Source of the DNA: Macrostomum lignano
Lineage: Eukaryota
Assembly: GCA_002269645.1 (NCBI GenBank)
Contig: NIVC01000707.1
Location: 124,001-188,000 of the forward strand
Direction: 5' to 3'
DNA: 64,000 nt
Within the stretch, counting starts at the first letter, position 1. Every line of letters starts with the position of its first letter. The notes beneath the pieces are model-generated. The model made no database searches, was not told the origin of the DNA, and was given only the letters and a program-made list of their open reading frames with translations. Position numbers and translations under genes: made by a program. Below are positions 13,155 to 43,507 of the stretch, in pieces.

Positions 13155-15889
<2,735 letters not shown>

Positions 15890-20310: not shown

Positions 20311-20378
20311 AGATAGCCTAGATGCGAGTAGACTGGACTGCTAATGTAGTGACCTGGGTTCGAATCTTAGTAGAGCAA
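20311..20378 (+). mobile_element. Degenerate tRNA-Ser(GCT)-like SINE head
   Basis: A-box-like TAGCCTAGATG, anticodon-arm-like CTGGACTGCTAATGTAG, B-box GGGTTCGAATC. No intact cloverleaf. Confidence 0.4.
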
Positions 20379-20444
20379 AATAATTTTTTTGTTAAAACAC
20401 CCTAAAAACACAAAATGCTAAACATAAAAGGGCCATCATGCCAA

Positions 20445-21980
20445 GCATATACGTGCCTCCATGTCGAACATTAAAGAGCCACCATGTCAAACATCAAAGA
20501 GCCACCATGTCAAACATAAAAGAGCCACAATGTCCAACATTAGAGCCACCATGTCGAACATTAAAGAGCTACCATGTCAAACATTAAAGAGCCACCATTT
20601 CGAACATTAAAGGGCCACAATGTCAAAAATTAAAGAGTTACCATGTAAACATAATAGAGCCACCATGTCAAACATTAAAGAGCCACTATATCAAACATTA
20701 AAGAGCTACCATTTCAAACATAAAAGAACCATCATGTCAACCAGAAAAGAGCCACCATGTCAAACATTAAAGGGCCACCATGTCTAATATAAAAGAGCCA
20801 TTCATGTTGAACATAAAGGAGCCACTATGTTGACATTAAAGAGCCACCATGTCAAACATTAAAGAGCCACCATTTCAAACATAAAAGAGCCACTATATCA
20901 AACATTAAAGAGCTACCATTTCAAACATAAAAGAACCATCATGTCAAGCAGAAAAGAGCCACCATGTCAAACATTAAAGAGCCACCATTTTGAACATTAA
21001 AGAGTCATTATGTCAAACATAAAAGAGCCACTATGTAAAACATATATGTGACTCTATATCAAACATATACGTGACTTCATGTTGAACATTAAAGAGCCAT
21101 CATGCTGAACATTAAAGAGCCACCATGTCAAACATATAAGAGACTTTATTTCAAACAAAAAGAGCCAACTTTTTGAACATTAAAGAGTCATTATGTCAAA
21201 CATAAAAGAGCCACTATGTAAAACATATATGTGACTCTATATCAAACATATACGTGACTTCATGTTGAACATTAAAGAGCCACCATGTTGAACATTAAAG
21301 AGCCACTATAAAACAAAAAAAACATTTCGACCATTAAAGAGCCACCATGTCGAACATTAAAGAGCTACCATATCAAACATTAAAGAACCACCATGTCAAA
21401 CTTTAAAGTGCCATCGTGTCGAGCATTAAAGAGCCACAATGTAAAACATAAAAACAACCATTTCGAACATTAAAGAGCCACAATGTCGAACATTAAAGAG
21501 CTACCATGTCAAACATTAAAGAGCCACCATGTCGAACATTAAAGAGCCACCATGTCGAACGTTAAAGAGCCACCATGTCGAACATTAACGAGCCACCATG
21601 TCAAACATTAAAGAGCCACCATTTTGAACATTAAAGAGTCATTATGTCAAACATTAAAGAGCCACTTTGTTGAATATTAAAGAGCCACTATGTCAAACAT
21701 TAAAAAGCCACCATGTCAAACATTAAAGAGCCACCATGTCGAACATAAAGGAGCCACCATGTTGAACATAAAGGAGCCACCATGTCGAACATAAAAGAAC
21801 CACCATGTAGAACATAAAAGAGCCACCATGTCTGATATAAAAGAGCCACCATGTAGAACATAAAAGAGCCACCATGTTGAAAATTAAAGAGCCAACCTGT
21901 AAAACATTTAAAAGATTCACCATGTCAAACATATAAGTGACTTCATTTCAAACATAAAAGAGCCACTATGTCAAACATAA
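20445..21980. repeat. ~20-21-bp diverged minisatellite (AAAGAGCCACCATGTCAAACATT), >70 units
   Basis: Continuous imperfect tandem array. Confidence 0.93.
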
Positions 21981-22075
21981 AAGATACACAATTCAAAATG
22001 TAAAAGTGAGTGAATTTTAAAGGAGCCACTATAATGCTAAGGAAATTGTCGCACTAGCTACTTATTGTCTGGTGG

Positions 22076-22270
22076 ATGCTTGCTATTTGGGGATGCTATC
22101 TATCTGGGGGATGCTTGCTATCTAGGGGTGCTTGCTATCTGGGGGATGCTTGCTATCTGGGGGATGCTTGCTATCTGGGGATGCTTGCTATCTGGGGGAT
22201 GCTTGCTATTTGGTTGATGCTTGCAATCTGGGGGATGCTTGCTATCTGGGGGATGCTTGCTGTCTTGGGA
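22076..22270. repeat. 18-bp minisatellite (TGCTTGCTATCTGGGGGA)
   Basis: About 11 units; related arrays at ~27947-28035 (inverted) and ~33540-33635. Confidence 0.85.
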
Positions 22271-22566
22271 TGATTTTTTTTGCATTGCACTTCATTTGAG
22301 TAGTTTGTTTGTTTTCTTTGTGAAAGCTTTATTTGGCTATCTTCTTATTACTTGTAGAGAACAGAGATTCTATACAGATGTCCCCCAACGGGGGGCGAAG
22401 ATTGCTAGTAGATTTACTTAAAAGCAGGCATCATAAGTGAAAACAAATACGAATTTGAGATTCTTATAGATGAAAGGGAAAATATATTTATTCAATACAA
22501 AAGCTGCTAAGCTGGGTACCAAAACAGTGCGAAATGCGACTGTCAGATTCAAGGAATCAGGAATAC

Positions 22567-23804
22567 TCAGGTAATGTAGGCCCTGACAGCTCCCAGGATG
22601 CGGGATCCGCACTGCGGACAGGCCGAACTCGAGCTCAGGCAGCCGCGGCACAGCAAGAAGTGCGCGCACGGCAGGGTCACGTGATCCCGGGTGCGCTCTC
22701 GGCACAGCAGGCACTTGTCACTCTGAGCTGCGACCTCTGCGTCCTCCTCCACGGAGATCTGCGAATGAAAGCCCGGGTGACCGGACTTCTCTGCAGCCTG
22801 CGCTGACTGGGGCTTGGAACTTCTGGCTGCTTGGGCTCGGGATTGAAGGGCTTCTGATTTCTGCTGCTCCAGTGCGGGTCTCTGCTGCTCCAGTGCGGGT
22901 CTCCGCTGCTCCAGTGCGGGTCTCTGCTGCTCCAGTGCGGGTCTCTGCTGCTCCAGTGCGGGTCTCTGCTGCTCCAGTGCGGGTCTCTGCTGCTCCAGTG
23001 CGGGTCTCTGCTGCCGCTCCCCTGACGCTCCCGACTCGTTCAGCGTTGCGCAGTCGCTCAGCACGGCCTCCACGTCGATCACGTGACCCCAGTCGGGCTG
23101 CAGCTCCTCGAACTCGCGGATCATCTCGATGAGGTCGCCCGGCCTGCAGGCCAGCTGGCCGCCCCGAGTCATGAAGTGCCGGCAGGCGCAGTACAGCACG
23201 CTGCTTCTGGCGAAGCCGAACGACTCGACCAGACCGAGCATCGATCTGCGCTCGAGCAGGTCGCTGCTCAGCTTGGCGAGCGCGCGTCTCAGCTTGGCGG
23301 AGGTGGCGACGACCCGGTCGTGTCGCTCGCTGAGCATTCCGTGAGCAACCTTGAGCAGCGTGAGCAGCTCGCACTGCTCGCCTCCCAGCTGCTCGTGAAG
23401 CCGCAGCGGCTCGTCGGTCGGGCCGCCCGGCCGCACCGGAAGCCGGCAGCCGCAGTGGAAGCAGCGAACTGCTCCGGTGGCCGCCTCATCAGCCGGCAGG
23501 AAGAGGCCAGCATCCGCCCAGCGACACCGGGCCGCCTCATCAGCCAGGAAGGGCGCCGCCGACCGACTGAGCGACCGCAGCCGCGTCGCGTACTCGGCGA
23601 AAGCGGGGAACCTGGCGGCGGTGACGCAGAACAGCAGGCTGCCTGGAAGGAAAATTGTGTGCTGTTAGTTCCATCGCAGACTTTTGATATTGCAGCAATA
23701 TTTTTAATGAACACACCACTGAGCAAGTTACCTCTTGTGTAGAAGCTTGCGCTGTCTGCAAGTGTCAAGCAGAGCTGCTTGCTGAATGCGGAGCTGCCTT
23801 CCAT
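22567..23804 (-). CDS. IAP-like protein copy 1 (BIR-UBA-repeat-RING), join complement(22567..23642,23732..23804)
   Basis: Exon 1 MEGSSAFSKQLCLTLADSASFYTR-G with phase-1 donor G/GTAACT and acceptor CTTCCAG. Divergent BIR RLRSL...WADAGLFL...VRCFHC-x18-H-x7-C; UBA-like FGFARSSV; 7x QQRPALE; C3HC4 RING CLLC...PCAHFLLCRGC...CPQC. TATATAA at ~23863-23869. Confidence 0.85.
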
Positions 23805-24256
23805 TCCGCAGTTTGTGCAAAATCTGCAGTGTTTGCAGAGGGGCTGTTTGGATACAAGCAACTTATATATGCGGGCTAACATCTATATTTACTTAGTGCT
23901 TGGCTAAAAATAGCCCCACCCAAGTGCTTGGACTCTCCGATCGCAAGCACGGGGGCTTCCCGTGTAATTTGCTTGCAGGCCGAAAATAGTCCGAATTGCA
24001 ACTTCCTCATTCTGCAGTACGAGTTGCTGGTCATGTAGAACCCAACTGACTGAGTACAACATGTGCACAAATAGCCAGCTAGAGCCTCAACAAAAGGAAC
24101 TTGAAGTTCGCAATCATTGACGTAATCTTTTCATTTTTTAGGTACACTAAATTAGCGATTTTCGATTTTCGATTTCCATTATTTTGAAGTACGAGCTGAA
24201 ACCTATTTTAAGCCATTGAATTGTAGGAACAATGAGCTGTGTCATGCATCAGGGAA

Positions 24257-25172
24257 TGGATTGCTAATCTAGCCTATCACGGGTGCAGGAATAGAATGGA
24301 TTGCTAATCTAGCCTATCACGGGTGCAGGAATAGAATGGATTGCTAATCTAGCCTATCACGGGTGCAGGAATAGAATGGATTGCTAATCTAGCCTATCAT
24401 TGATGCAGGAATAGAATGGATTGCTAATCTAGCCTATCATGGGTGCAGGTATAGAATGGATTGCTAATCTAGCCTATCATGGGTGCAGGAATAGAATGGA
24501 TTGCTAATCTAGCCTATCATGGGTGCAGGAATAGAATGGATTGCTAATCTAGCCTATCATGGATGCAGGAATAGAATGGATTGCTAATCTAGCCTATCAT
24601 GGGTGCAGGAATAGAATGGATTGCTAATCTAGCCTATCATGGGTGCAGGAATAGAATGGATTGCTAATGTAGCCTATCACGGGTGCAGGAATAGAATGTA
24701 TTGCTAATCTAGCCTATCATGGATGCAGGAATAGAATGGGTTGCTAATCTAGCCTATCACGGGTGCAGGAATAGAATGGATTGCTAATCTAGCCTATCAT
24801 GGATGCAGGAATAGAATGGATTGCTAATCTAGCCTATCATGGGTGCAGGAATAGAATGGATTGCTAATCTAGCCTATCACGGGTGCAGGAATAGAATGGA
24901 TTGCTAATCTAGCCTATCACGGGTGCAGGAATAGAATGGATTGCTAATCTAGCCTATCATGGATGCAGCAATAGAATGGATTGCTAATCTAGCCTATCAC
25001 GGGTGCAAGAATAGAATGGATTGCTAATCTAGCCTATCACGGGTGCAGGAATAGAATGGATTGCTAATCTAGCCTATCACGGGTGCAGGAATAGAATGGA
25101 TTGCTAATCTAGCCTATCATGGGTGCAGGAATAGAATGGATTGCTAATCTAGCCTATCACGGGTGCAGGAAT
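24257..25172. repeat. 40-bp minisatellite, ~23 units
   Basis: Unit TAGAATGGATTGCTAATCTAGCCTATCACGGGTGCAGGAA. Confidence 0.97.
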
Positions 25173-25976
25173 GAAATGGTTTGACTTGTTAAAAGATTCA
25201 CTCAAGTCTGGTTTGCACCTTCACCAGACAAGACAAAATCTGTGCCATCACAATGTCTGTACACTAATTTTCTTAGCTATATGCGAGCATGTATCATTCG
25301 TGCGAATTAAAACCATCTTTGATGGCGATGTCAACAAGCTTTGACAGGCATCAGAGACAGAACCCTGTCAATGTTACAAGTTCTGCGGCACAATGCCCGT
25401 ATCGGGGCTGGTCGCGAGCCCAGGTCCCTCCTGCTTTGCAACCATTCAATGGAGTAGAATGAGAGGTCTCTAGCTGACTGGCTCAGGACATTCGCCGCCA
25501 GTCCTGGAACCCAAGTTAAGCAGAGTTGGCTACGGTTAGTACACTGCTACATAGACTTTTTGCGTCACCCCCTGAAGGCAGACATGCGTGAGTTGAGCTC
25601 CAGCTCACCAGCTGAGCTGTGGTGGCGCGAGAGTTCGAACCCCACACGACATAAATCGGAGCTAAGACAGTCCAAAGCATTGTGTCTTTGAAATAAATCT
25701 TTGCACGCGATTCCAACAACAGAGACGGCAAAATTCAATCAGTTTTTAAAAACCCATTAGGCAGTAATGCAATGCTGGGAAGTTGTAAAATACGAGTATA
25801 TTACGAGGTATTATGGCTATTGAGCTGAGTAAACTCTCTAGTTAAAGCTAAGAGACATTCGTACTTTAGCCCTGGATTAAGTGGAAATGCCGATCAAACA
25901 AGTCATTGGACAGTAAAATACACCCCACAGCCGCAGTACTGAGCGCAACGGAATAAAAACAGGGCAGCAACGCCAT

Positions 25977-27211
25977 TCAGGCGATAAACGCCCTCAGAGA
26001 TGCCAGGATGCGGCCACCGCACTGTGGACAGTCTGTTCTAGAGCTGACGCAGCCGTGGCACAGCAGGAAGTGTGCGCATGGCAGGGTCACGTGATCCCGG
26101 GTGCGCTCTCGGCACAGCAGACACTTCTCTGAGCAGCCGCCGAGCTCGTTGGGCTTCAGCTGATCAGCGTCGGGAGAAACTGACGGCTGCCGAGCAACAC
26201 CAACTAGTGAGCTTCCACCGACTGTGGCTGCCCGGCACATCGCCACCGCCCCCTGCTGCTCCAGTGCGGGTCTCTGCCGCTCCAGTGCGGGTCTTTGCTG
26301 CTCCAGTGCGGGTCTCTGCTGCTCCAGTGCGGGTCTCTGCTGCTCCAGTGCGGGTCTCTGCTGCTCCAGTGCGGGTCTCTGCTGCTCCAGTGCGGGTCTC
26401 TGCTGACGCTCCCCTGACGCTCCCGACTCGTTCAGCGTCGCGCAATCGCTCAGCACGGCCTCCACGTCGATCACGTGACCCCAGTCGGGCTGCAGCTCCT
26501 CGAACTCGCGGATCATCTCGATGAGGTCGCCCGGCCTGCAGGCCAGCTGGCCGCCCCGAGTCATGAAGTGCCGGCAGGCGCAGTACAGCACGCTGCTCCT
26601 GGCGAAGCCGAACGACTCGACCAGACCGAGCATCGATCTGCGCTCGAGCAGGTCGCTGCTCAGCTTGGCGAGCGCGCGTCTCAGCTTGGCGGAGGTGGCG
26701 ACGACCCGGTCGTGTCGCTCGCTGAGCATTCCGTGAGCAACCTTGAGCAGCGTGAGCAGCTCGCACTGCTCGCCTCCCAGCTGCTCGTGAAGCCGCAGCG
26801 GCTCGTCGGTCGGGCCGCCCGGCCGCACCGGAAGCCGGCAGCCGCAGTGGAAGCAGCGAACTGCTCCGGTGGCCGCCTCATCAGCCGGCAGGAAGAGGCC
26901 AACATCCGCCCAGCGACACCGGGCCGCCTCATCAGCCAGGAAGGGCGCCGCCGACCGACTGAGCGACCGCAGCCGCGTCGCGTACTCGGCGAAAGCGGGG
27001 AACCTGGCGGCGGTGACGCAGAACAGCAGGCTGCCTGGAAGGTCGGTGAGGGAGCAGTGGTTGAGCATTTTCAGCCTGTTGACAGGAAAATCACAGGGCA
27101 AGTCAGCCAGCAGTGCAGAGAGGTCTCACCCAGCGCATATTCCGAGTTCCGAGTTCCGAGCTGGCGCAAATTTTGCGCAGTCCGCTGGCCGAAGACGCCA
27201 TTGCGCTGCAT
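25977..27211 (-). CDS. IAP-like protein copy 2, join complement(25977..27034,27130..27211)
   Basis: Exon 1 MQRNGVFGQRTAQNLRQLGTRNSEYAL-G with phase-1 donor G/GTGAGA. Same BIR/UBA core; 7 repeats; distinct linker and second half of RING (CHGCVSSRTDCPQCGGRILASLRAFIA). Confidence 0.85.
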
Positions 27212-28037
27212 CCACAGCCTGGCACTGACACAAGCTTCTGCTGCTGCTGGCCACTCTGTGCTCTGTGCAAGGCTTGGTAGCTTATAACCACTGCTTGCAA
27301 ACCGGTTTTGGTTCCAAGTTAAGCATTTGTAGATAACTTTGCCAAGAGACGAAAGTATATTCGGGGATCTCTCACGTACCCCGTAGCCAGTTCTTGCAGT
27401 GGAGTGGAAATTTCTATTTTTAACTTTGAGTCTCAGTCTCAGAATGAGTCTCAGAATGCCAGTGTACATTGGATGTACATTTAGAGTGCGCGGCTGGACT
27501 AGTTTGAAAGCGGTTTCTGTGAAGCAGCGCACACGCCCTCTAAAAGTAATTTTCTTTGAATGCAATTGCTTCATTGCCCTTCAAATATATATTTATAATT
27601 TATGGATATGAAAATGTCGTAAATATGCTTTGTAAAACAATCTAAGAGATATAAGAGAATACCATTGATTATTCAAAATTAACATTTAGTATTTCACTAG
27701 CTATTTAGCCCCCCCCCCTTTTTGGGGCCTTAAAAATGACACCAAATTGCCATGAATCAAAACTTTCATCAAGAAAGTTTCTTTCATCAACCCAAAACCC
27801 TTTCTCAATCAGCAAATAGTGCTTATCCTTTCAAGCACAAACTCTTAGTGCATATTGTCACTGGCCGGGGGCATATTCTGGTCTAAAGCAGGAGCTCACG
27901 GCCTTATACCTCTCTTTATTAGCCTAACTCAAAGAATCCCCCAGAAAGCAAGCATCCCCCAGACAGCATGCATCCCCCAGACAGCAAGCATCAGCAAGCA
28001 TCCCCCAGACAGCAAGCGTCCCCCAAACCAAGCATAT

Positions 28038-29227
28038 GCTGGGCACTGATATTGAGGAAAAAATTGCCACAAGACGGCACCTATGTACCATTAAACTACT
28101 GCCTTTCTGTAGTTTGGAAAGCCCACTCATTAAAATTCATGTGCCTATCTTTGCTGTGTATGGCACTATATGTTTCGGTAAACTTTAAAACAAAATATTT
28201 TATTCTGGTAGAGTAGCTCGCTTAATAAATAGGAATAAAATGAATGAGAGAACAAACATTAACTCGTTTTTATTTACTTTAATTCAATTGCCAATGCATT
28301 TCGACCCTTCTAGGTCATCGTCAGGGCAGTAGTGAAATTGAAAATTCTAATAAACAGTTGAATAAATATACCTGTGATAACTTGAATACACAATATAAAT
28401 TATTGTACGTAGTTTTCAATCGACACAAGTTAACACACGGTGCAGTAGCGTACACTCCAAGCTAAAACACGCTGAGTTGGCGGCTGGCACTGGCACCCCC
28501 CATAGCTAGCTGGCAGTTTAGGCTCGGGTTCTGATCTTTGATGTACATAGAGCACACTTTGAATATCTTAGAGGGCTATGTCTGCCTGCCAGCGCACCAT
28601 GCTGAGTTTGGCCAAAATCTTTTGCGCGCCGTGGTTGCTTACAACAGCCACCACATTTAATCCCGGTAACTCGGTTTTCTGCTTTAAAAGAAATGGCAGT
28701 GGTTGTTAGTCTCACAGTAAAGTAGTATTCAAAGGACCCATAAATTTAAAATACTAAACTTTTTGCAAGCTCCCGTACTGTAGAAAGCTTTCATACTTTT
28801 GCTACTTTATATGCTAATACGAGCAATACCTTGCAATATTATTGCAGAAATGCATGTAGTTCTGGTTAATATTTGAGGAACTTGCTACACAAAAAGAATA
28901 TAGTTATTTTGAAATTTTTCTATAAAACCCATGCTGTTTCCGAGTATTTAAATGTAAACAATTTGTAATGTTATTTAACTTACTAAATCACAAGCTTGTA
29001 ATCTTGTACTCTTTTTGTACAAGTATACATTGAGTCTGCCACTTGCTAAGAATTTCTGCTTGTCTTATTAACGAGAGCAATTAACGAGAGCAATTGTACA
29101 CAGATTGTACACAAAGATAGGCACATGAATTTTAATGAGTGGGCTTTCTGAACTACAGAAAGGCAGTAGTTTAATGGTACATAGGTGCCGTCTTGTGGCA
29201 ATTTTTTCCCCAATATCAGTGCCCAGC
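28038..29227. mobile_element. Foldback/MITE-like segment bounded by 116-bp inverted repeats
   Basis: 28038-28153 is the reverse complement of 29112-29227 with ~4 mismatches. No TSD identified. Confidence 0.6.
28289..28328 (-). ncRNA. Type I minimal hammerhead ribozyme (solo)
   Basis: Minus strand TGCC-CTGACGA-T-GACC(TAGAAG)GGTC-GAAA-TGCA-TT/GGCA: stem I TGCC/GGCA, stem II GACC/GGTC, palindromic stem III ATGCAT, AUU cleavage triplet. Confidence 0.78.
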
Positions 29228-29689
29228 CTAACCTTTGGTAAGTCAGTCCCTTACTGTCTAAAATACTTAGATTAGCTTTTTTGACTTCAAAAATGCATTT
29301 ATTTTTAACTGACTGTTTATTCAAAATATTCTAGTTATCGATAATTTTCAGCTTCAAGAACAGTTGGAAGCCAAGAGAAGGCATGAAGGTCACGCGAACA
29401 TGGCACTAACATATAATAGCAAAACTTATCTCGGATTCACCCACAGCGGCTAAATATGAAACCAGAAACCCCAAAGGCCACTTGAGTGCAGCACTGACGT
29501 AGGCGTACGTTAATTTATTACGTTGTGCATCAGACGCAACCAGTGAGCCATTACTCACATGCTAAATATAGACTGCAAAGTACATGGCCTGTCCACGCCA
29601 ATAGAACACTATAAAAGCACTGCTAGATGTAGGGCTAGCATGGACCAACCATACAGGCCGCATTCGCAGCACCCACTGCCAGTCCTGAC

Positions 29690-31086
29690 ATGCCGGCATT
29701 CAGCAAAGTCACCGAGGACAAAATACACTCGGCCAGATCGCCCTACAGACTGGGTAAGCAGAGCTGTCCGCTCTCTGCAGCTTTTACTACTGAAATTTAC
29801 TCTGCCGTGATGTTAAAAAATTGCTCAACCACTGCTCCCTCACCGACCTTCCAGGCAGCCTGCTGTTCTGCGTCACCGCCGCCAGGTTCCCCGCCTTCGC
29901 CGAGTACGCGACGCGGCTGCGGTCGCTCAGTCGGTCGGCGGCGCCCTTCCTGGCTGATGAGGCGGCCCGGTGTCGCTGGGCGGATGCTGGCCTCTTCCTG
30001 CCGGCTGATGAGGCGGCCACCGGAGCAGTTCGCTGCTTCCACTGCGGCTGCCGGCTTCCGGTGCGGCCGGGCGGCCCGACCGACGAGCCGCTGCGGCTTC
30101 ACGAGCAGCTGGGAGGCGAGCAGTGCGAGCTGCTCACGCTGCTCAAGGTTGCTCACGGAATGCTGAGCGAGCGACACGACCGGGTCGTCGCCACCTCCAC
30201 CAAGCTGAGACGCGCGCTCGCCAAGCTGAGCAGCGACCTGCTCGAGCGCAGATCGATGCTCGGTCTGGTCGAGTCGTTCGGCTTCGCCAGGAGCAGCGTG
30301 CTGTACTGCGCCTGCCGGCACTTCATGACTCGGGGCGGCCAGCTGGCCTGCAGGCCGGGCGACCTCATCGAGATGATCCGCGAGTTCGAGGAGCTGCAGC
30401 CCGACTGGGGTCACGTGATCGACGTGGAGGCCGTGCTGAGCGACTGCGCGACGCTGAACGAGTCGGGAGCGTCAGGGGAGCGTCAGCAGAGACCCGCATT
30501 GGAGCAGCAGAGACCCGCACTGGAGCAGCAGAGACCCGCACTGGAGCAGCAGCAGAGACCCGCACTGGAGCAGCAGAGACCCGCACTGGAGCAGCAGCAG
30601 AGACCCGCACTGGAGCAGCAGAGACCCGCACTGGAGCAGCAGAGATCCGCACTGGAGCAGCAGAGACCCGCACTGGAGCAGCAGCAGAGACCCGCACTGG
30701 AGCAGCAGAGACCCGCACTGGAGCAGCAGAGACCCGCACTGGAGCAGCAGAGACCCGCACTGGAGCAGCAGAGACCCGCACTGGAGCAGCAGAAATCAGA
30801 AGCCCTTCAATCCCGAGCCCAAGCAGCCAGAAGTTCCAAGCCCCAGTCAGCGCAGGCTGCAGAGAAGTCCGGTCACCTGGGCTTTCATTCGCAGATCTCC
30901 GTGGAGGAGGACGCAGAGGTCGCAGCTCAGAGTGATAAGTGCCTGCTGTGCCGAGAGCGCACCCGGGATCACGTGACCCTGCCGTGCGCGCACTTCTTGC
31001 TGTGCCGCGGCTGCCTGAGCTCGAGTTCGGCCTGTCCGCAGTGCGGATCCCGCATCCTGGGAGCTGTCAGGGCCTACATTACCTGA
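29690..31086 (+). CDS. IAP-like protein copy 3, join(29690..29753,29855..31086)
   Basis: Exon 1 MPAFSKVTEDKIHSARSPYRL-G with phase-1 donor G/GTAAGC; TATAAAA at 29610-29616. BIR, UBA-like, 14 repeats (three with an extra Q). RING tail nearly identical to copy 1. Confidence 0.87.
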
Positions 31087-31782
31087 GCCATTTTGCTGCG
31101 ACTTTGAAACGCCTTTGTTGGTTCCGGCAGCGCATTTTATAGGATTTCGCGAAGAATTTTCGACTCAACTTTCATGGACGACTCAGGTTGGACTCAAAAT
31201 GGCAGTTCTTGCTTGATTTTTTTACTTAAATTTTGATCTACCGGCTGGCTTGAAGTTTGACTGTCGGTCTTTTGCCACAATTGAGTTCTTGGTTGTTTAT
31301 CTAGCCTTTCTCTCCGCCTTCAAAGTCTTCAATGCTGAATTGTTTTACTATAATGCGTATAAAGAATAACTGCGTTTTACTTAGATAAAACTTATATTTA
31401 AGCTTTTTATTATGTTTTATAGATTAGTTCGCTTCGTCAAGACTCAAGACGTTAATTGGTTTGTTAAAATGCGCTCTATGAAATATTTTGTACTGTTATT
31501 TATTATCAACAATAAATAAACCGGTCGTATTAACGAAATTCCAAGTGACTTCTCGAGGGCTTTTCTCAGAGTTTTTGGTGCCCAAAATTTGGTGGGATTT
31601 CATTGTCGGCTATGCCGTTTAGGAGTATTTAGGACAATGACCTGTGGGCCTATTTCGAGCTCTCAATGAGCTTTTATGCTCCTTATGATACCGAAGTATT
31701 GTCCTAAAAATATGAGCAGTCTGGGATCAGCCGCTATCAGGCATGAGGGAGAAACAAATGTTGTGCCTTCGCCTGCAGCTGT

Positions 31783-32880
31783 GCAGTCTCTGACCCTCAT
31801 CTCCGCTCCCCTTCTCTCCCTCCCTGCAGCCTCTGAACCTCATCTCCGCTCCCCTTCCCTCCCTCCCTGCAGCCTCTGAACCTCATCTCCGCTCCCCTTC
31901 TCTCCCTCCCTGCAGCCTCTGACCCTCATCTCCGCTCCCCTTCCCTCCCTCCCTGCAGCCTCTGACCCTCATCTCCGCTCCCCTTCTCTCCCTCCCTGCA
32001 GCCTCTGAACCTCATCTCCGCTCCCCTTCTCTCCCTCCCTGCAGCCTCTGACCCTCATCTCCGCTCCCCTTCCCTCCCTCCCTGCAGCCTCTGAACCTCA
32101 TCTCCGCTCCCCTTCCCTCCCTCCCTGCAGCCTCTGAACCTCATCTCCGCTCCCCTTCTCTCCCTCCCTGCAGCCTCTGACCCTCATCTCCGCTCCCCTT
32201 CTCTCCCTCCCTGCAGCCTCTGAACCTCATCTCCGCTCCCCTTCTCTCCCTCCCTGCAGCCTCTGAACCTCATCTCCGCTCCTCTTCCCTCCCTCCCTGC
32301 AGCCTCTGAATCTCATCTCCGCTCCCCTTCCCTCCCTCCCTGCAGCCTCTGAACCTCATCTCCGCTCCCCTTCCCTCCCTCCCTGCAGCCTCTGAATCTC
32401 ATCTCCGCTCCCCTTCTCTCCCTCCCTGCAGCCTCTGAACCTCATCTCCGCTCCCCTTCTCTCCCTCCCTGCAGCCTCTGAACCTCATCTCCGCTCCCCT
32501 TCCCTCCCTCCCTGCAGCCTCTGAACCTCATCTCCGCTCCCCTTCTCTCCCTCCCTGCAGCCTCTGAATCTCATCTCCGCTCCCCTTCTCTCCCTCCCTG
32601 CAGCCTCTGAACCTCATCTCCGCTCCCCTTCTCTCCCTCCCTGCAGCCTCTGAACCTCATCTCCGCTCCCCTTCCCTCCCTCCCTGCAGCCTCTGAATCT
32701 CATCTCCGCTCCCCTTCCCTCCCTCCCTGCAGCCTCTGAACCTCATCTCCGCTCCCCTTCCCTCCCTCCCTGCAGCCTCTGAATCTCATCTCCGCTCCCC
32801 TTCTCTCCCTCCCTGCAGCCTCTGAACCTCATCTCCGCTCCCCTTCCCTCCCTCCCTGCAGCCTCTGAACCTCATCTCCC
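31783..32880. repeat. 43-bp minisatellite, ~25 units
   Basis: Unit CTGCAGCCTCTGAACCTCATCTCCGCTCCCCTTCTCTCCCTCC. Confidence 0.97.
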
Positions 32881-33842
32881 TTTCACTTAGTTTTGAATAA
32901 ATTCTGCACACAATCATCATCACAAAACAATATTTTAAATCTCTTAGATCTGTCTGACCGGTATTTCAGTATTCAGCCTGAATGCCTGAACCGAATTTTT
33001 TTCAAACTTGCTGTATTGAATTGGAAATTCTTGTGAGATTGTGTGGGTGTAATTGCATTAAAAAATTAGAATGGGAAGATGGTTAAATATTCGAAAAACT
33101 GTATTTTCCCCATCTATTTAGTGTATTTTTTCGCAGTGAGGGCTCAATATGTCTTTGGCCATAGACTAAACTTCAGCTTCTTGAGCTGATGCTCCGAGCT
33201 ATAAATAATTAAATACGAGTATTCGAAAACATGCTTTTTTGCATAAGGGAGAGATATCAGCCAGTGCACTTTAAAAGTATTGAATTATTGCGCAACTTTT
33301 TTTTAATTTGTTTTTTTTTTTTATTGCGCAACTGTGTATAGGCCTCACTGCTATATATCACTCACTGTGTATATCACTGCTATGTATTTGACTGCAGTGC
33401 CGAAGCATATATGGCTGATGCTAAAAATGGTCTGTCGGTGTGTGCCCCGGTGGGTGCTTGCTACGTCTGTTGGATGCTTGCTGTTTGGCGCCACTATATA
33501 GTATATGCAAATGATAGAAAAATGCTCAGCGGCTGCGTGCTGTTTGGGAAATGCTTGCTGTCTTGGGGATGCTTGCTGTCTGAGGAATGCTTGCTGTCTT
33601 GGGGATGCTTGCTGTCTGAAAAATGCTTGCTGTCTGCGGGCCTGTCTGCAATGTGCAATTTCATGTTCATGAATTTTTGAAACAAATGCAACCCATTGAG
33701 TTCGCGGGTACGTAGCGGAGTGCAGCGAACATTGAACCCTTAAATCTAGACTTAGTGTAGACTGAAGTCCAAAGTACTGAGAGATAAACATTGCGCCCAG
33801 AGTTCGCATAAGTCTATTGATACGAAGTACTGACGCCAGACA

Positions 33843-36597
33843 CCAGGTAGATCAGAGCCGTAAGCTAATGACACTGCAGGTAGATCAGAGCCGTAAGCTA
33901 ATGACACTGCAGGTAGATCAACTGTAGGCTAATGACACTGCAGGTAGATCAGAGCCGTAAGCTAATGACACTGCAGGTAGATCAACTGTAGGCTAATGAC
34001 ACTGCAGGTAGATCAGAGCCGTAAGCTAATGACACTGCAGGTAGATCAACTGTAGGCTAATGACACTGCAGGTAGATCAACTGTAGGCTAATGGCACTGC
34101 AGGTAGATCAGAGCCGTAAGCTAATGACACTGCAGGTAGATCAGCTGTAGGCTAATGACACTGCAGGTAGATCAGCTGTAGGCTAATGGCACTGCAGGTA
34201 GATCAGAGCCGTAAGCTAATGGCACTGCAGGTAGATCAACTGTAGGCTAATGACACTGCAGGTAGATCAGAGCCGTAAGCTAATGACACTGCAGGTAGAT
34301 CAACTGTAGGCTAATGACACTGCAGGTAGATCAACTGTAGGCTAATGACACTGCAGGTAGATCAGAGCCGTAAGCTAATGACACTGCAGGTAGATCAACT
34401 GTAGGCTAATGACACTGCAGGTAGATCAACTGTAGGCTAATGGCACTGCAGGTAGATCAGAGCCGTAAGCTAATGACACTGCAGGTAGATCAGAGCCGTA
34501 AGCTAATGACACTGCAGGTAGATCAACTGTAGGCTAATGGCACTGCAGGTAGATCAGAGCCGTAAGCTAATGACACTGCAGGTAGATCAGCTGTAGGCTA
34601 ATGACACTGCAGGTAGATCAGCTGTAGGCTAATGGCACTGCAGGTAGATCAGAGCCGTAAGCTAATGGCACTGCAGGTAGATCAACTGTAGGCTAATGAC
34701 ACTGCAGGTAGATCAGAGCCGTAAGCTAATGACACTGCAGGTAGATCAACTGTAGGCTAATGACACTGCAGGTAGATCAACTGTAGGCTAATGACACTGC
34801 AGGTAGATCAGAGCCGTAAGCTAATGACACTGCAGGTAGATCAACTGTAGGCTAATGACACTGCAGGTAGATCAACTGTAGGCTAATGGCACTGCAGGTA
34901 GATCAGAGCCGTAAGCTAATGACACTGCAGGTAGATCAGAGCCGTTAGCTAATGACACTGCAGGTAGATCAACTGTAGGCTAATGGCACTGCAGGTAGAT
35001 CAGAGCCGTAAGCTAATGACACTGCAGGTAGATCAGCTGTAGGCTAATGACACTGCAGGTAGATCAGCTGTAGGCTAATGGCACTGCAGGTAGATCAGAG
35101 CCGTAAGCTAATGGCACTGCAGGTAGATCAACTGTAGGCTAATGACACTGCAGGTAGATCAGAGCCGTAAGCTAATGACACTGCAGGTAGATCAACTGTA
35201 GGCTAATGACACTGCAGGTAGATCAACTGTAGGCTAATGGCACTGCAGGTAGATCAGAGCCGTAAGCTAATGACACTGCAGGTAGATCAACTGTAGGCTA
35301 ATGACACTGCAGGTAGATCAACTGTAGGCTAATGGCACTGCAGGTAGATCAGAGCCGTAAGCTAATGACACTGCAGGTAGATCAGCTGTAGGCTAATGAC
35401 ACTGCAGGTAGATCAACTGTAGGCTAATGACACTGCAGGTAGATCAGCTGTAGGCTAATGACACTGCAGGTAGATCAGCTGTAGGCTAATGGCACTGCAG
35501 GTAGATCAGCTGTAGGCTAATGGCACTGCAGGTAGATCAGAGCCGTAAGCTAATGGCACTGCAGGTAGATCAGCTGTAGGCTAATGACACTGCAGGTAGA
35601 TCAGCTGTAGGCTAATGGCACTGCAGGTAGATCAGAGCCGTAAGCTAATGGCACTGCAGGTAGATCAGCTGTAGGCTAATGGCACTGCAGGTAGATCAAC
35701 TGTAGGCTAATGACACTGCAGGTAGATCAGCTGTAGGCTAATGGCACTGCAGGTAGATCAGAGCCGTAAGCTAATGGCACTGCAGGTAGATCAGCTGTAG
35801 GCTAATGACACTGCAGGTAGATCAGCTGTAGGCTAATGGCACTGCAGGTAGATCAACTGTAGGCTAATGGCACTGCAGGTAGATCAACTGTAGGCTAATG
35901 GCACTGCAGGTAGATCAACTGTAGGCTAATGACACTGCAGGTAGATCAGCTGTAGGCTAATGACACTGCAGGTAGATCAGCTGTAGGCTAATGACACTGC
36001 AGGTAGATCAGCTGTAAGCTAATGGCACTGCAGGTAGATCAACTGTAGGCTAATGACACTGCAGGTAGATCAACTGTAGGCTAATGACACTGCAGGTAGA
36101 TCAACTGTAGGCTAATGACACTGCAGGTAGATCAACTGTAGGCTAATGACACTGCAGGTAGATCAACTGTAGGCTAATGACACTGCAGGTAGATCAACTG
36201 TAGGCTAATGGCACTGCAGGTAGATCAACTGTAGGCTAATGACACTGCAGGTAGATCAACTGTAGGCTAATGGCACTGCAGGTAGATCAACTGTAGGCTA
36301 ATGACACTGCAGGTAGATCAGCTGTAGGCTAATGACACTGCAGGTAGATCAGCTGTAAGCTAATGGCACTGCAGGTAGATCAGCTGTAAGCTAATGGCAC
36401 TGCAGGTAGATCAGCTGTAGGCTAATGACACTGCAGGTAGATCAGCTGTAAGCTAATGACACTGCAGGTAGATCAGCTGTAGGCTAATGACACTGCAGGT
36501 AGATCAACTGTAAGCTAATGACACTGCAGGTAGATCAGCTGTAGGCTAATGGCACTGCAGGTAGATCAGCTGTAGGCTAATGGCACTGCAGGTAGAT
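33843..36597. repeat. Composite 31/33-bp minisatellite with 446-bp higher-order repeat
   Basis: Constant GCTAATG(A/G)CACTGCAGGTAGATCA plus GAGCCGTAA (33-bp unit) or (A/G)CTGTAG (31-bp unit). A 14-monomer block recurs at 34141, 34587 and 35033. Confidence 0.97.
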
Positions 36598-36872
36598 GCT
36601 CGGTCTTGTCGAGACGTTCAGCTTCGTCAGAGCTATTGAAAAACTGAAAAAATAATCTATAAAGCGATAGCCAAACTTGACGCACTTGATAGCAACCGAA
36701 AGTGACCCAGCAGACCAAAGGTCATAGTGCAGTGCATTCTTGCCCAAAAATAACTGTGAACCAGAGGACTGCAGCAAAATACTTTATTAGCCTAGCCCAA
36801 GCTTTATTCTAAAACCTGTTTAGCTCTCGAGCGAAGCGCTGCATCTGCTGGAACTGAGCCTACCGATCCCCG

Positions 36873-38061
36873 ATGCACAGCTGCCGGCTACTTGGAGCCA
36901 AGGTTGCCGCGAGACTGCAGCCCGGAACAGCCTACGTGAGCAGTAAGTGAGCAAACAAAGACCCCCCCATCTTGGCGGAGTTGGCCTAAACCTGCAGAAC
37001 TGATTGACCTCCTTCCAGGTAGCCTGCTGTTCTGCGTCACCGCCGCCAGGTTCCCCGCTTTCGCCGAGTACGCGACGCGGCTGCGGTCGCTCAGTCGGTC
37101 GGCGGCGCCCTTCCTGGCTGATGAGGCGGCCCGGTGTCGCTGGGCGGATGCTGGCCTCTTCCTGCCGGCTGATGAGGCGGCCACCGGAGCAGTTCGCTGC
37201 TTCCACTGCGGCTGCCGGCTTCCGGTGCGGCCGGACGGCCCGACCGACGAGCCGCTGCGGCTTCACGAGCAACTGAGAGGCGAGCAGTGCGAGCTGCTCA
37301 CGCTGCTCAAGGTTGCTCACGGAATGCTGAGCGAGCGACACGACCGGGTCGTCGCCACCTCCGCCAAGCTGAGACGCGCGCTCGCCAAGCTGAGCAGCGA
37401 CCTGCTCGAGCGCAGATCGATGCTCGGTCTGGTCGAGTCGTTCGGCTTCGCCAGGAGCAGCGTGCTGTACTGCGCCTGCCGGCACTTCATGACTCGGGAC
37501 GGCCAGCTGGCCTGCAGGCCGGGCGACCTCATCGAGATGATCCGCGAGTTCGAGGAGCTGCAGCCCGACTGGGGTCACGTGATCGACGTGGAGGCCGTGC
37601 TGAGCGACTGCGCAACGCTGAACGAGTCGGGAGCGTCAGGGGAGCGGCAGAGACCCGCACTGGAGCAGCAGAGACCCACACTGGAGCAGCAGAGACCCGC
37701 ACTGGAGCAGCAGAGACCCGCACTGGAGCAGCAGAGACCCACAATGGAACAGCAGAGACCCGCACTGGAACAGCAGAGACCCGCACTGGAACAGCAGAGA
37801 CCCGCACTGGAGCAGCAGAGACCCACACTGGAGCAGCAGAGACCCGCACTGGAGCAGCAGAGACAGTCCGCATCAGCCTGTTCCATCAGCAAGAATTCAG
37901 TTGCATCAGACAGGTGCACGGGTTGCTGGCAAAGTGCCAAGAGCCAGGTAACCCTGCCCTGCGCGCACCTGCTGCTGTGTGCTGACTGCCTTCAAGCTCG
38001 GTCCCGCTGCCCCAGCTGTGGGGTACGAATCTTGGCCTCCGTTCGGGCCTATCTCGTTTGA
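36873..38061 (+). CDS. IAP-like protein copy 4, join(36873..36942,37019..38061)
   Basis: Exon 1 MHSCRLLGAKVAARLQPGTAYVS-S with phase-1 donor A/GTAAGT. Same core (~9 substitutions in ~630 bp versus copy 3); 10 repeats; divergent RING CTGC...PCAHLLLCADC...CPSC. Confidence 0.83.
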
Positions 38062-38396
38062 GGCGAGCTCAGTGATTGCCAGCAGCACCTGTGGCCCTTA
38101 CCCTTCCCATGTCTTTCATGTTTGAACCTAAAAAAATAAGTTTGAAAAGTCACATCAACAGTCATTGCGATCCTTCTTTTTTCAAGTTGTATTTGTTTGA
38201 ACATTCACTTGATAATCAAGCGACGAAAACCCCGCCGCAGGCTGACGACGTTGAGTCTGAAAAATGCGAATTGAGTGGCTGAGCTGACTCGCACTGCTGA
38301 TCTGATCTGTTGGATTAATATTGCAAGCTTCTCACTAGTTCGAAATAAAACTTATTCAGCGATATGCTCGCTTTTTCACGCTTCTGCTTAGCTCTC

Positions 38397-38641
38397 CCTA
38401 GCAACCCATCTCCCTAGCAACCCATCTCCCTAGCAACCATCTCCCTAGCAACCCATCTCCCTAGCAACCCATCTCCCTAGCAACCCATCTCCCTAGCAAC
38501 CCATCTCCCTAGCAACCCATCTCCCTAGCAACCCATCTCCCTAGCAACCCATCTCCCTAGCAACCCATCTCCCTAGCAACCCATCTCCCTAGCAACCCAT
38601 CTCCCTAGCAACCCATCTCCCTAGCAACCCATCTCCCTAGT
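38397..38641. repeat. 16-bp minisatellite (CTCCCTAGCAACCCAT), ~15 units
   Basis: Near-perfect tandem array, probably intronic to the secreted-protein gene. Confidence 0.96.
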
Positions 38642-38650
38642 AATGTGATC

Positions 38651-39178
38651 TCACTCACTCAGCTGGTGTCCCGGCCTGGCCTTCCTGGATCCAACATGCA
38701 GCTCACAGAAATGGGGGCTGTTGTTAAAATCGCAAACGCAGGTGCCCTCCATCAGCTGCCTTTTCAGATAGGCCTTGCTGTGCTCTGGCGTGTTCTGAGC
38801 AGCCGAGAGCCGCTGGCAGCGGCCTCCGGTTGTGTCTGGCGACTGCCCGAGTGGGCAGGGGTTGGGCGGGTCGCACTGCCTCAGGCACGATCGGTTCCTG
38901 GCTCCAGCGGGCAACGGCGGCAGCGTCACGGCCGAGTTCATCGGCCGCGGCTCCGCGGGCTTCCCAAGGCTCGCCAGCTGCTGCCACAGCCGGTCGGTGG
39001 CCGCGGCCTGAGCCTCCTTGGACAGCGCAGCTTCAGTCCAGTTGGCCACCTGCACCAGCCGGCGGAACTGAGCCTGCAGACGGTCCAGGAGGTCCTCTTG
39101 ATAGGCGGGCCGGCCGCGCAGCGACTGCGGCAGCAGCAGCAGCAAAATTAGCAGCGAGGTTCTCTTCAACAGCGGCAT
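38651..39178 (-). CDS. Secreted Cys-rich protein of unknown family (175 aa; possible extra 3' exon 38216-38256)
   Basis: N-terminal signal peptide MPLLKRTSLLILLLLLPQSLRG; helical pro-region; 7 Cys in the C-terminal third. Donor A/GTGAGT near the ORF end could splice in phase to TTTTCAG/AC...NSTSSACGGVFVA*, supplying an 8th Cys. Confidence 0.7.
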   Translation of the reverse strand: MPLLKRTSLLILLLLLPQSLRGRPAYQEDLLDRLQAQFRRLVQVANWTEAALSKEAQAAATDRLWQQLASLGKPAEPRPMNSAVTLPPLPAGARNRSCLRQCDPPNPCPLGQSPDTTGGRCQRLSAAQNTPEHSKAYLKRQLMEGTCVCDFNNSPHFCELHVGSRKARPGHQLSE

Positions 39179-39831
39179 GGCTGGCTGGTTGGCTTCCGCT
39201 TCTTCTGCTCTCTCGGCGGATTAACACTCGGGCAAATTAAAGGGAAATTTTGCTACAATTTTGCTTTTGGTCCCCCGTGCCAGCAGGGCGCAGAGAAATT
39301 CGATCAATGAACTCGAGCGGGACAGAAGCGTTTTCGAAAAATATTCTAGAAGCAATCGCTGACTGAATTGGAATTCTGTGTTGCTGCAGTTTGAAGTTCA
39401 AATAATTGCGACTTTCTGGCTTCAGTAAGCTCTTGCTCTGGATTTGCTTTTTGTCAGGAGCGGCAGCAGCTCAGCCTGAATCTCGCGCCAGAGTGCCCGG
39501 GTTCGATTCCGTGCGCGGGCCTGCCCATGAGGGCCAACCCGCAAGGCACTGAGACTGTACATGCCTGACGGTTAAAAATTTCTGGGTCGCTGTACACCCT
39601 GTGTGAGCGGGTGTGCTCAGAGGCAGCGGGATGGGCCTGACTGATGGATGCCGGTGGACTGTCGACGTGACCTGCGGCAGCGCCCACAGCCCCCTGCAAT
39701 CGTACTAAAACTAAGCTGTTTGGTTTCAGACGATGTGAAGAAATAAACTAAATTACGAAATTGGAGGTGGTGGCCAGGGAAACGGATTCTAGAAGTCCTT
39801 GCTTGGCCAGCGCACGCTCGGGAAACTCTAC

Positions 39832-39960
39832 AGTGTACTCCTTCTGTGTACTTTTAAACAGTGTACTTTTTAACAGTGTACTTTTGAACAGTGTACTTTT
39901 GAACAGTGCACTTTTGAACTGTGCACTTTTGAACTGTGCACTTTTGAACTGTGTACTTTT
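39832..39960. repeat. 15-bp minisatellite (CAGTGTACTTTTGAA)
   Basis: About 8 units. Confidence 0.9.
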
Positions 39961-39999
39961 GTTTTTGTATTGCGTCATAACCAATCAGTCCTGAAGACT

Positions 40000-40027
40000 T
40001 CATCGTTGCAGCAGCCGGCTTGCTGAT

Positions 40028-40076
<49 letters not shown>

Positions 40077-41431
40077 CTCCAGCCGCAGGTCGACGGACAC
40101 CCGAGCCCGCAGCTCCTCGAGCAGTCGGCGTCGCCGATCCTCCCGTAGCCTCGTCGCCATCGCCGTCAGCCTCTCGCCGGGCGTCGCCGCCGTCGCCGTC
40201 GTCGTCAGCAGCAGTCGGGAGCAGCTTGCGGAGCAGGCGGTGCGCGGTGAACACCAGCGGGCTGGCGAGGTTGTAGGGCACGGGCAGCGGCAGCAGCTGG
40301 TGGCGGTGCAACAGGGCGAAGCGGATCATCCGCCTGCTGCGGGCCCTCAGCCAGCTGTTTTCCTTGTCGGCCTGGACGCGCTGGAAGCTCGCCGACACCA
40401 TGGTGATCAACAGTTTGACGCCGACCACGAAGCCGAGGATCATCCAGCTGGCGTAGAGGATCGAACCTTTGGCGGCGCGGTGGGAGAGGGGCGGCGGTTC
40501 ACTCGAATTTGCTGGACTTTGATCCCGAATGCGGCGCTACAATGCGGCGCTGGAGGCATTTAAGCCAGCACCCTGAAGCCAGCACCCTGAAGCCAGCACC
40601 CTGAAGCCATCACCCTGAAGCCAGCATCCTGAAGCCATCACCCTGAAGCCATCACCCTGAAGCCATCACCCTGAAGCCATCACCCTGAAGCCATCACCCT
40701 GAAGACATCAACCTGAAGCCATCACCCTGAAGACATCAACCTGAAGCCATCACCCTGAAGACATCAACCTGAAGCCATCACCCTGAAGATATCACCCTGA
40801 CGCCATCACCCTGAAGCCATCACCCTGAAGCCATCACCCTGAAGCCATCAACCTGAAGCCATCAACCTGAAGCCATCACCCTGAAGACATCACCCTGAAG
40901 ATATCACCCTGAAGCCATCACCCTGAAGATATCACCCTGACGCCAGCACCCTGAAGCCATCACCCTGAAGCCATCACCCTGAAGCCATCAACCTGAAGCC
41001 ATCAACCTGAAGACATCAACCTGAAGCCATCACCCTGAAGCCATCACCCTAAGGCCAGAACCTCAGAAACCGGGCCGAACCTCACCCATGAAGGTTGTGA
41101 ACCGCGCAGTGTGTGGGCAGCGGGCTGAAATACTGATCCCAGGTGGCGGAGGTGCCAGTCAGGCTGTAGTCCTGAGGGGTTGTCATGTCGAACATCGCCC
41201 AGAAGAAGGTCACAGCAATAGACGTGAAGGTGTTGCCGAAGACGCTGCTGCCGTACTGGAAGTTCCGGTACAGGTTGGTCATGGCGGTGGTGTAGGCGAT
41301 GTTCACCGTGATCAGCACGGACAGGAACTTGGCCGCGTTCTTCATCATGCTCTGCACCGTGATGGCCAGCACCCCCATGGTCTTCTGCCACACGAACACG
41401 TTGCCCAGGGAGACGAACAGGAACAGATTGC
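40000..41431 (-). CDS. TRP cation channel (TRPC-like) 3' part: S4/S5, pore, S6, TRP domain; exons ~41086-41431 and ~40000-40520
   Basis: MGVLAITVQSMMKNAAKFL (S4-S5 linker), FTSIAVTFFWAMF (pore helix), LLITMVSASFQRV (S6), SWLRARSR (cf. EWKFAR), LPLPVPYNL (cf. LPPPFN). No N-terminal exons found, and the exact acceptor and C-terminal frame are uncertain. Confidence 0.75.
40563..41050. repeat. 14-bp minisatellite (AAGCCATCACCCTG) in TRP intron
   Basis: About 35 units between the two TRP exons. Confidence 0.95.
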
Positions 41432-41459
41432 CTGCGGTCGGGGCCGCGCGAGTGCTGTA

Positions 41460-41860
41460 GTCTGGTCCTCATTCTCTCAACTGGTCCTCATTCTCTCAAC
41501 TGGTCCTCATTCTCTCAACTGGTCCTCATTCTCTCAACTGGTCCTCATTCTCTCAACTGGTCCTCATTCTCTCAACTGGTCCTCATTCTCTCAACTGGTC
41601 CTCATTCTCTCAACTGGTCCTCATTCTCTCAACTGGTCCTCATTCTCTCAACTGGTCCTCATTCTCTCAACTGGTCCTCATTCTCCCAACTGGTCCTCAT
41701 TCTCTCAACTGGTCCTTCGTTTTCTCAACTGGTCCTCATTCTCTCAACTGGTCCTCATTCTCTCAACTGGTCCTCATTCTCTCAACTGGTCCTCATTCTC
41801 TCAACTGGTCCTCATTCTCTCAACTGGTCCTCATTCTACACCCAACTGGTTCTCATTCTA
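41460..41860. repeat. 19-bp minisatellite (CTGGTCCTCATTCTCTCAA)
   Basis: About 21 units just upstream of the TRP exon acceptor. Confidence 0.95.
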
Positions 41861-41872
41861 TGCTCAAATGGT

Positions 41873-43490: not shown

Positions 43491-43507
43491 CCAGCTAGAA
43501 CTCCCAG

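Follow-up and report, generated by a model that had tools for sequence, protein, structure and literature searches.

Probable concerted evolution of a tandem cluster of IAP-like RING genes of Macrostomum lignano, a flatworm

A 64-kb stretch of contig NIVC01000707.1 of the Macrostomum lignano assembly GCA_002269645.1, referred to below as the window, carries a tandem cluster of four IAP-like genes predicted to encode RING E3 ubiquitin ligases, a family specific to M. lignano so far. With a probability of roughly 85%, the genes are old paralogues in which interlocus gene conversion from a genomic DNA template has made the common core uniform. Sequence comparison supports mosaic tails: genes 1 and 3 have the same tail, gene 2 a partial mosaic and gene 4 a private one. 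An earlier note, made from the letters of the window alone, had already proposed old paralogues with a converted core, and this is sustained by the contrast between the synonymous divergence (dS) of the core, ~0.02, and that of the RING region, 0.44 or saturated, as well as by the disagreement between flanks and cores. The evolutionary pattern is clear but textbook: standard concerted evolution by interlocus gene conversion, in a family that has not itself been described before. The literature searched contained no earlier account of the cluster, nor of gene conversion in Macrostomum. The cluster of the window (W; window positions 19651-41086 are identical to NIVC01000707.1 143651-165086) was compared with two further clusters, X and Y.

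Repeat finding, pairwise blastn comparison and the listing of open reading frames (ORFs) located four two-exon paralogues in the order -,-,+,+, where the earlier note had placed them, and two-exon models were built, with the following parts.

22567-23804, minus strand: gene 1, with exon 1 at 23732-23804 (MEGSSAFSKQLCLTLADSASFYTR-G) and the intron at 23643-23731
22567-23642, minus strand: exon 2 of gene 1, with the core at 23025-23642, the array at 22860-23014 (7 units) and the linker and RING of type 1/3 at 22567-22859
25977-27211, minus strand: gene 2, with exon 1 at 27130-27211 (MQRNGVFGQRTAQNLRQLGTRNSEYAL-G) and the intron at 27035-27129
25977-27034, minus strand: exon 2 of gene 2, with the core at 26417-27034, the array at 26253-26405 (7 units) and the private linker and RING of type 2 at 25977-26252
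29690-31086, plus strand: gene 3, with exon 1 at 29690-29753 (MPAFSKVTEDKIHSARSPYRL-G) and the intron at 29754-29854
29855-31086, plus strand: exon 2 of gene 3, with the core at 29855-30472, the array at 30484-30793 (14 units), the linker at 30794-30936 and the RING at 30937-31083
29855-30472, plus strand: core of gene 3, with the BIR-like part at ~29890-30160 and the helical region at the UBA position at ~30175-30400
36873-38061, plus strand: gene 4, with the predicted exon 1 at 36873-36942 (MHSCRLLGAKVAARLQPGTAYVS-S) and the intron at 36943-37018
37019-38061, plus strand: exon 2 of gene 4, with the core at 37019-37636, the array at 37641-37864 (10 units) and the private linker and RING of type 4 at 37865-38061

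All four genes have a phase-1 junction, a GT donor, an intron of 76-101 nt and a CCTTCCAG acceptor, in agreement with the short, private phase-1 first exons described earlier; their Y-x-x ending also occurs in P0012, the closest known paralogue outside the cluster. The junction of exons 1 and 2 is supported by NCBI models in gene 2 (P0018) and gene 3 (P0001). Gene 1 corresponds to a partial NCBI model (P0017), and the model in cluster X begins at the position matching the predicted ATG; for gene 4 there is no annotated model in the window. The protein P0019 from ML2, an older assembly, fuses upstream sequence specific to gene 4 with the consensus core; it would require another donor, placed 9 nt upstream and in a frame without ATG. 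The core is followed by a coding minisatellite with a 21-bp unit encoding QQRPALE. Across the 13 copies of the three clusters the array has between 4 and 35 units, and its length differs strongly even between homeologues of one gene (7, 19 and 20 units for gene 1; 10, 35 and 15 for gene 4). The annotated coding sequences of P0018 and of the X1 model are 14 residues, or two units, shorter than the genome sequence.

The 618-nt cores of the four window paralogues are 4-9 substitutions apart (98.5-99.4% identity). Eight substitutions were counted between genes 3 and 4, close to the nine or so reported in the earlier note. For genes 1 and 4 the 5' edge of the identity lies 8 nt before exon 2, and for genes 2 and 3 the distance is 37 nt (27071/29818). 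The earlier note had set the edge at the acceptor with an earlier start in copies 2 and 3; the earlier start stands, with 29 nt of additional sequence instead of 33.

27035-27071, minus strand: 3' end of the gene 2 intron, which matches that of gene 3 (29818-29854) with 97% identity over 38 nt

The intron ends of genes 2 and 3 are near-identical, and therefore intron DNA is part of the homogenised tract. At the other end, the extent of the tract depends on the pair of genes. In genes 1 and 3 the linker and RING tail of 294 nt is 99.3% identical, and the identity stops one base beyond the stop codon (22566/31087), as was noticed from the sequence earlier. For genes 2 and 4 homogenisation extends as far as the 3' end of the coding minisatellite and no further. 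The linker of gene 2 is private, and its RING has CLLCRERTRDHVTLPCAHFLLC in common with genes 1 and 3; compared with type 1/3 it is 94% identical over the initial 69 nt and 73% over the final 78 nt, counting all sites, which matches the half-shared RING described in the earlier note. At synonymous sites only, the two halves show 4/18 and 9/20 differences, a contrast that was judged, without a formal test, to be too weak. The RING of gene 4 is as divergent as had been said, with 56-57% nucleotide identity to the other types over the RING codons. The first exons, introns, untranslated regions (UTRs) and private linkers of the paralogues could not be aligned. The sole other flank similarity found by blastn with a word size of 7 is an inverted repeat between genes 2 and 3, which may be a relic of an inverted duplication or a short mobile element.

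28038-28157 and 29109-29227, no strand assigned: arms of the inverted repeat (120 nt, 97% identity) in the divergent intergenic region between genes 2 and 3

Conversion through cDNA, with a spliced transcript as the repair template, was an option raised in the earlier note, and it would account for identity bounded by exon edges: the identity does begin near the acceptor, and that between genes 1 and 3 ends one base past the stop codon. Intron sequence is nevertheless part of the tract, amounting to 8 nt in every copy and to 37 nt in genes 2 and 3. Neither exon 1 nor the two UTRs, all of which are expected in cDNA, are shared, and each copy has kept its intron. The option is thus most improbable and is abandoned here. 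The template was genomic DNA, since intron bases are inside the tract and exon 1 and the UTRs are outside it.

The difference in age between the parts of the genes is seen at synonymous sites. The cores differ at only 3-4 of 159 such sites (dS ~0.02), and the RING of gene 2 differs from that of genes 1 and 3 at 13 of 39 (dS 0.44). For the RING of gene 4 against the others the count is ~30 of 38, which is saturated (dS above 1). Within gene pairs the contrast between core and RING is strong (Fisher's test, p = 4e-8 to 3e-24). The RING codons of different types nevertheless align without gaps. The core-equivalent part of P0012 has 41% protein identity, and its RING shows 54-60% nucleotide identity to the types of the family, the RING of gene 4 being equally far from the others. 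The RING of P0012 was considered as a donor of the type 2 or type 4 tail and ruled out, at 54-59% nucleotide identity. An intron in phase 1 also interrupts P0012 at exactly the corresponding position (VYCL-C|CLIF against Y-x-x-G|SLLF); therefore, the two-exon structure and the Y-x-x motif are older than the cluster. Another relative, P0006, is a gene without an intron, and hence uninformative on intron conservation. The G+C content of third codon positions (GC3) stands at 0.87 for the core and at 0.84 for the converted RING (0.84-0.88 across converted segments); the private RINGs have 0.69-0.71 and the linkers 0.47-0.62.

The pattern is repeated in two collinear homeologous clusters of the same assembly, X (NIVC01001187.1, five copies) and Y (NIVC01000365.1, four copies), which together with the four copies of W make 13. 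M. lignano is a neopolyploid with the subgenomes S, L1 and L2, which are 1.9-2.4% apart in single-nucleotide polymorphisms (SNPs) and far more in insertions and deletions (indels) (PMC10733133). The clusters W, X and Y fit these published subgenomes. Among the 13 copies, upstream regions, private tails and UTRs cluster by gene. Orthologous upstream flanks are still alignable, with a SNP difference of 1.85%, and homeologous flanks show 94-100% identity over 500 nt, but between paralogues no flank alignment is obtained; since flanks of subgenome age are alignable, the paralogues must have separated long before the last common ancestor of their cores. In any comparison the cores have 98.4-100% identity, and their SNP differences hardly depend on what is compared.

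Core SNP difference between orthologues: 0.84%
Core SNP difference between paralogues, all pairs: 0.94%
Core SNP difference between paralogues on the same contig: 0.96%
Core SNP difference between paralogues on different contigs: 0.92%

In the 13 copies neither orthology (permutation p = 0.06) nor contig (permutation p = 0.81) structures the cores significantly. Concordant trees of core and flank, which the earlier note had named as grounds for giving up conversion, did not appear: flanks group by gene and cores do not. An excess of conversion within clusters was considered and not found (0.96% within against 0.92% between contigs). Twenty-five variable sites survive in the cores, some of them orthologue-specific. 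Of the nine informative core sites, six carry variants that recur in different paralogues without regard to orthology, and the four-gamete test fails for 17 of 36 site pairs. Variant minisatellite units typical of gene 4 (PTLE, PTME) are found in copy X5 too, and a related unit, PIME, in Y3.

It could be supposed that the genes are young, having arisen by whole-gene duplication about 1% of divergence ago, with their flanks and tails replaced by indel turnover or by acquisition from outside. Non-coding turnover in this species is indeed very fast: subgenome copies differ by ~36% with indels counted and by ~2% in SNPs only (PMC10733133). Yet the homeologous flanks, which are as old as the coalescence of the cores, have remained alignable, and those of paralogues have not. 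Gapless RING codons with dS from 0.44 to above 1 indicate slow substitution and not replacement; the closest outside RING, that of P0012, is no donor; and the position and phase of the intron are older than the split of the family. A recent origin is thus very unlikely.

Extreme purifying selection on the synonymous sites of the core, imposed, for example, by an overlapping antisense ORF or by RNA structure, could in principle keep the cores alike with no conversion. Every copy does have long ORFs across the core in other frames and in antisense, but the core is 69% G+C, at which such ORFs are expected. Selection of this kind would not hold intron bases identical, nor would it yield shared polymorphisms that cross orthology, and the homologous core of P0012 has diverged down to 41% protein identity. 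This explanation is scarcely credible.

The remaining alternative is technical, namely that truly diverged cores were made alike by Pilon with cross-mapping short reads of DNA and RNA. The assembly, Mlig_3_7, was built from the inbred DV1 line with PacBio reads assembled by Canu, and it was polished by Pilon using Bowtie2-mapped Illumina DNA reads and STAR-mapped RNA-seq reads (PMC5730564); 93% of the read pairs have more than one mapping locus in the M. lignano genome (PMC10733133). However, short reads do not cross-map at the divergence of the RING tails (dS 0.44 to saturated), and polishing removes the last few percent of difference at most. The abrupt drop from 99% identity to unalignable sequence sits within the intron, out of reach of RNA reads. 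Differences have also persisted, both at the 25 variable core sites and in the lengths of the arrays, and the ML2 protein couples the upstream sequence of gene 4 to the identical consensus core. An artefact as the whole explanation is highly improbable.

Several points weigh against conversion among old paralogues all the same. Pilon with multi-mapping reads could erase real differences among the 13 cores and create some of the shared variants, so that the absolute identity of the cores and the evidence of exchange after the subgenome split are softer than they appear; polishing may exaggerate the last 1-2% of core identity. All three clusters come from one assembly and one inbred line, and the ML2 check is only semi-independent, because PacBio data are common to both assemblies. 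There are just nine informative sites, two of which (core positions 256 and 596) are in CpG context, and recurrent mutation could explain some of the incompatibilities. The GC3 signature of biased conversion is not specific, because unrelated neighbouring genes are equally high (0.80-0.87). Exon 1 of gene 4 is a prediction only.

On the favoured reading, gene conversion from genomic DNA has homogenised, in all copies, the stretch that begins at the splice acceptor and runs through the minisatellite, and, in genes 1 and 3, exon 2 in its entirety. The edges of the tract would lie where homology survives: coding sequence under selection is kept well enough for heteroduplex formation, and the non-coding flanks are quickly rewritten by indels and minisatellites. 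The tract would thus look exon-bounded because coding sequence alone keeps enough homology. The internal minisatellite is probably the likeliest start or stop point of exchanges, since the block ends there in genes 2 and 4 and the number of units ranges from 4 to 35. A more specific proposal is that the minisatellite acts as a recombination initiator which keeps the substrate-recognition module (divergent BIR plus helical domain) identical in all 13 copies, including through homeologous exchange, while N-terminal peptides, linker length and RING tails diverge, giving E3 enzymes with one target and different outputs or partners; this is offered tentatively and is considered unlikely.

Interlocus conversion limited to coding sequence takes place in Drosophila hsp70, in primate globin and opsin pairs and in the mouse Naip array. 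As in textbook concerted evolution, the M. lignano genes combine a near-identical, sharp-edged tract with old, diverged flanks, conflict between tract and flank trees, mosaic polymorphisms and a GC3 that is raised in the tract, though within the range of neighbouring genes. The flatworm tract departs from the textbook cases in having an internal coding minisatellite as its anchor on one side and in its length, which depends on the pair (all of exon 2 for genes 1 and 3, only the core for genes 2 and 4); the subgenomes of a neopolyploid, besides, display the pattern three times.

Some observations concern the homeologous clusters themselves. The fifth copy of cluster X (L002 15341-16479, minus strand, NIVC01001187.1) is an inverted duplicate of gene 3 that carries the intron, the 3' UTR and the 43-bp minisatellite of gene 3 in a palindrome-like arrangement with it. 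Its upstream region is 2.2-2.8% from every gene 3 orthologue, and so this copy may predate the subgenome split and have been lost from W and Y. In Y4, the gene 4 copy of cluster Y, one nucleotide is missing from a short run of G (CCGGGCGG to CCGGCGG; core position 215, L004 ~9911), which breaks the BIR frame, and the NCBI model P0004 accordingly begins at an internal Met; the deletion marks either a young pseudogene or a PacBio indel error. The relations of the contigs are mosaic. X equals Y over gene 1, save one substitution in the tail, and the two are ~2.5% apart around gene 2; W and Y differ by just 0.3% over 37641-46316. Such a mosaic points to subgenomes that have recombined or exchanged sequence, or else to scaffolds that are chimeric. 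A block of 2.6 kb, consisting mostly of 23-bp and 18-bp minisatellite arrays (window 19843-22408), is an insertion in W only; the homeologous contigs of X and Y lack it and join 19842 straight to 22409.

The earlier note had assigned the proteins the BIR-UBA-RING architecture of the C-terminal part of XIAP and cIAP, of which an IAP-type RING and, at profile level, a BIR were recovered, and a UBA was not. The RING matches Pfam zf-C3HC4_3 in all four genes with 31.7-38.6 bits against a cut-off of 27, and its best PDB matches by phmmer are the RINGs of cIAP2 (E = 5.5e-8), cIAP1 and XIAP; phmmer searches of PDB with whole proteins gave RING matches only. As judged from these sequence matches, the RING is of the IAP type. 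In Pfam searches with single proteins the RING alone was significant, and the BIR had E = 0.1-0.16. Matches to DUF5892 and HmpF were dismissed as low-complexity matches on the QQRPALE array.

Evidence for the BIR is found at the level of profiles. A window protein scores 13.6 bits with the Pfam BIR model, below the gathering score of 22.9, but the model matches five of six family members at E <= 1, with a best E of 2.2e-4. In the reverse direction, the family profile searched against PDB finds BIR chains only among the matches listed (NAIP, survivin, BIRC6, XIAP and DIAP1; E = 1.4e-7 to 2e-3). The zinc ligands C60, C63, H82 and C90, in the numbering of the core translation, are invariant in the family alignment. 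Their spacing is non-canonical, CX2C-X18-H-X7-C compared with CX2C-X16-H-X6-8-C, and the three usually conserved Trp positions read R, L and L. The AlphaFold2 (AF2) model of the core is only moderate in the BIR-like part, with a block-mean predicted local distance difference test (pLDDT) of 58-75. A Foldseek search with the 206-residue core model gave no significant match, the best being 3t6p (cIAP1 BIR3-UBA-CARD-RING, E = 0.7); most of the short matches listed for the BIR-like part (~3 A root-mean-square deviation) are BIR chains, none of them significant. On the profile comparisons, the BIR-like domain is a real but divergent BIR, with homology apparent at profile level only.

The helical region at the UBA position is modelled with a pLDDT of 86, its helices being residues 2-15, 17-25, 30-43 and 52-65 and a short one at 75-80. 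The profile search of PDB yields no UBA for this region, and hhalign against an approximate sequence of the cIAP1 UBA gives a probability of 0.6%. All Foldseek matches have E >= 1.8; the UBA of USP13 is on top, and the UBA of XIAP (2kna) has a query-normalised TM-score of 0.59. The predicted fold is thus suggestive of a UBA, with a match that is not significant. With a non-canonical BIR and an unproven UBA, the genes are most fittingly described as IAP-like.

An exhaustive HMMER search found six further distant relatives, of which the five looked up are all from M. lignano, and matched the canonical multi-BIR protein P0011 (E = 7e-4), the origin of which was unchecked. Close relatives came from M. 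lignano only in the protein searches. Human BIRC8 (ILP-2), BIRC7 (livin/ML-IAP) and the C-terminal half of XIAP and cIAP1/2 have the same layout of a single BIR, a helical region and a C-terminal zf-C3HC4_3 RING. IAP RING dimers use a C-terminal aromatic residue for E2 activation; like cIAP2 (...RTFL...), the flatworm RINGs have an aromatic residue three positions from the C terminus (RAYIT, RAFIA, RAYLV). The flatworm proteins would work as dimeric RING E3 enzymes with a common recognition module and different tails. The combinatorial repertoire of ubiquitin ligases put forward in the earlier note is a conjecture about their function. They depart from BIRC8, BIRC7, XIAP and cIAP in the BIR score below the Pfam gathering threshold and the altered ligand spacing and Trp positions, in the coding heptad minisatellite (4-35 units) that separates the helical domain from the RING, and in having family relatives from M. 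lignano only; in comparison with XIAP, cIAP and BIRC8, their UBA is not detectable by sequence. Lineage-specific expansions of IAP genes exist, for example in bivalves. The bivalve expansions are likewise a multiplied BIR-RING family of a marine invertebrate, in tandem arrays; the flatworm set, in contrast, is small, with four or five clustered genes and a few distant paralogues, and is homogenised, its BIR not being diversified.

The surroundings of the cluster are rich in repeats. Tandem repeats make up ~15% of the M. lignano genome, and the window contains ~35 minisatellite arrays with periods of 14-98 bp, many of which yield long spurious ORFs, as well as a perfect (TCTA)127 microsatellite. 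A dispersed short repeat is shared by the upstream regions of gene 2 and of the 31-bp array in front of gene 4. In AT-rich surroundings there is an ORF with a GIY-YIG nuclease domain, which may belong to a Penelope-like or another mobile element, and two neighbouring genes are unrelated to the IAP-like family.

3714-4301, plus strand: ORF with a GIY-YIG nuclease domain (Pfam E = 1.5e-5)
13481-13990: perfect (TCTA)127 microsatellite
27938-28028 and 33542-33640: dispersed short repeat, 80% identity over 99 nt
58310-59596, minus strand: protein with DnaJ and thioredoxin domains (DnaJ E = 1.5e-23)
61766-62308, minus strand: small RING-H2 protein (zf-RING_2 E = 7e-8)

The cluster provides an internally calibrated case of concerted evolution, in which the three subgenomes serve as a clock: the cores of the paralogues coalesce at about the time of the subgenome split, and the RING tails and flanks are far older. 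Gene trees based on the core will badly underestimate the age of the family. The cores are inseparable by short reads, RNA interference probes and quantitative PCR, and therefore the results of single-gene expression or knock-down experiments report on the whole family. The analysis also flags a divergent, apparently lineage-restricted family of IAP-like E3 ligases in a regeneration model that is used for the study of cell death.

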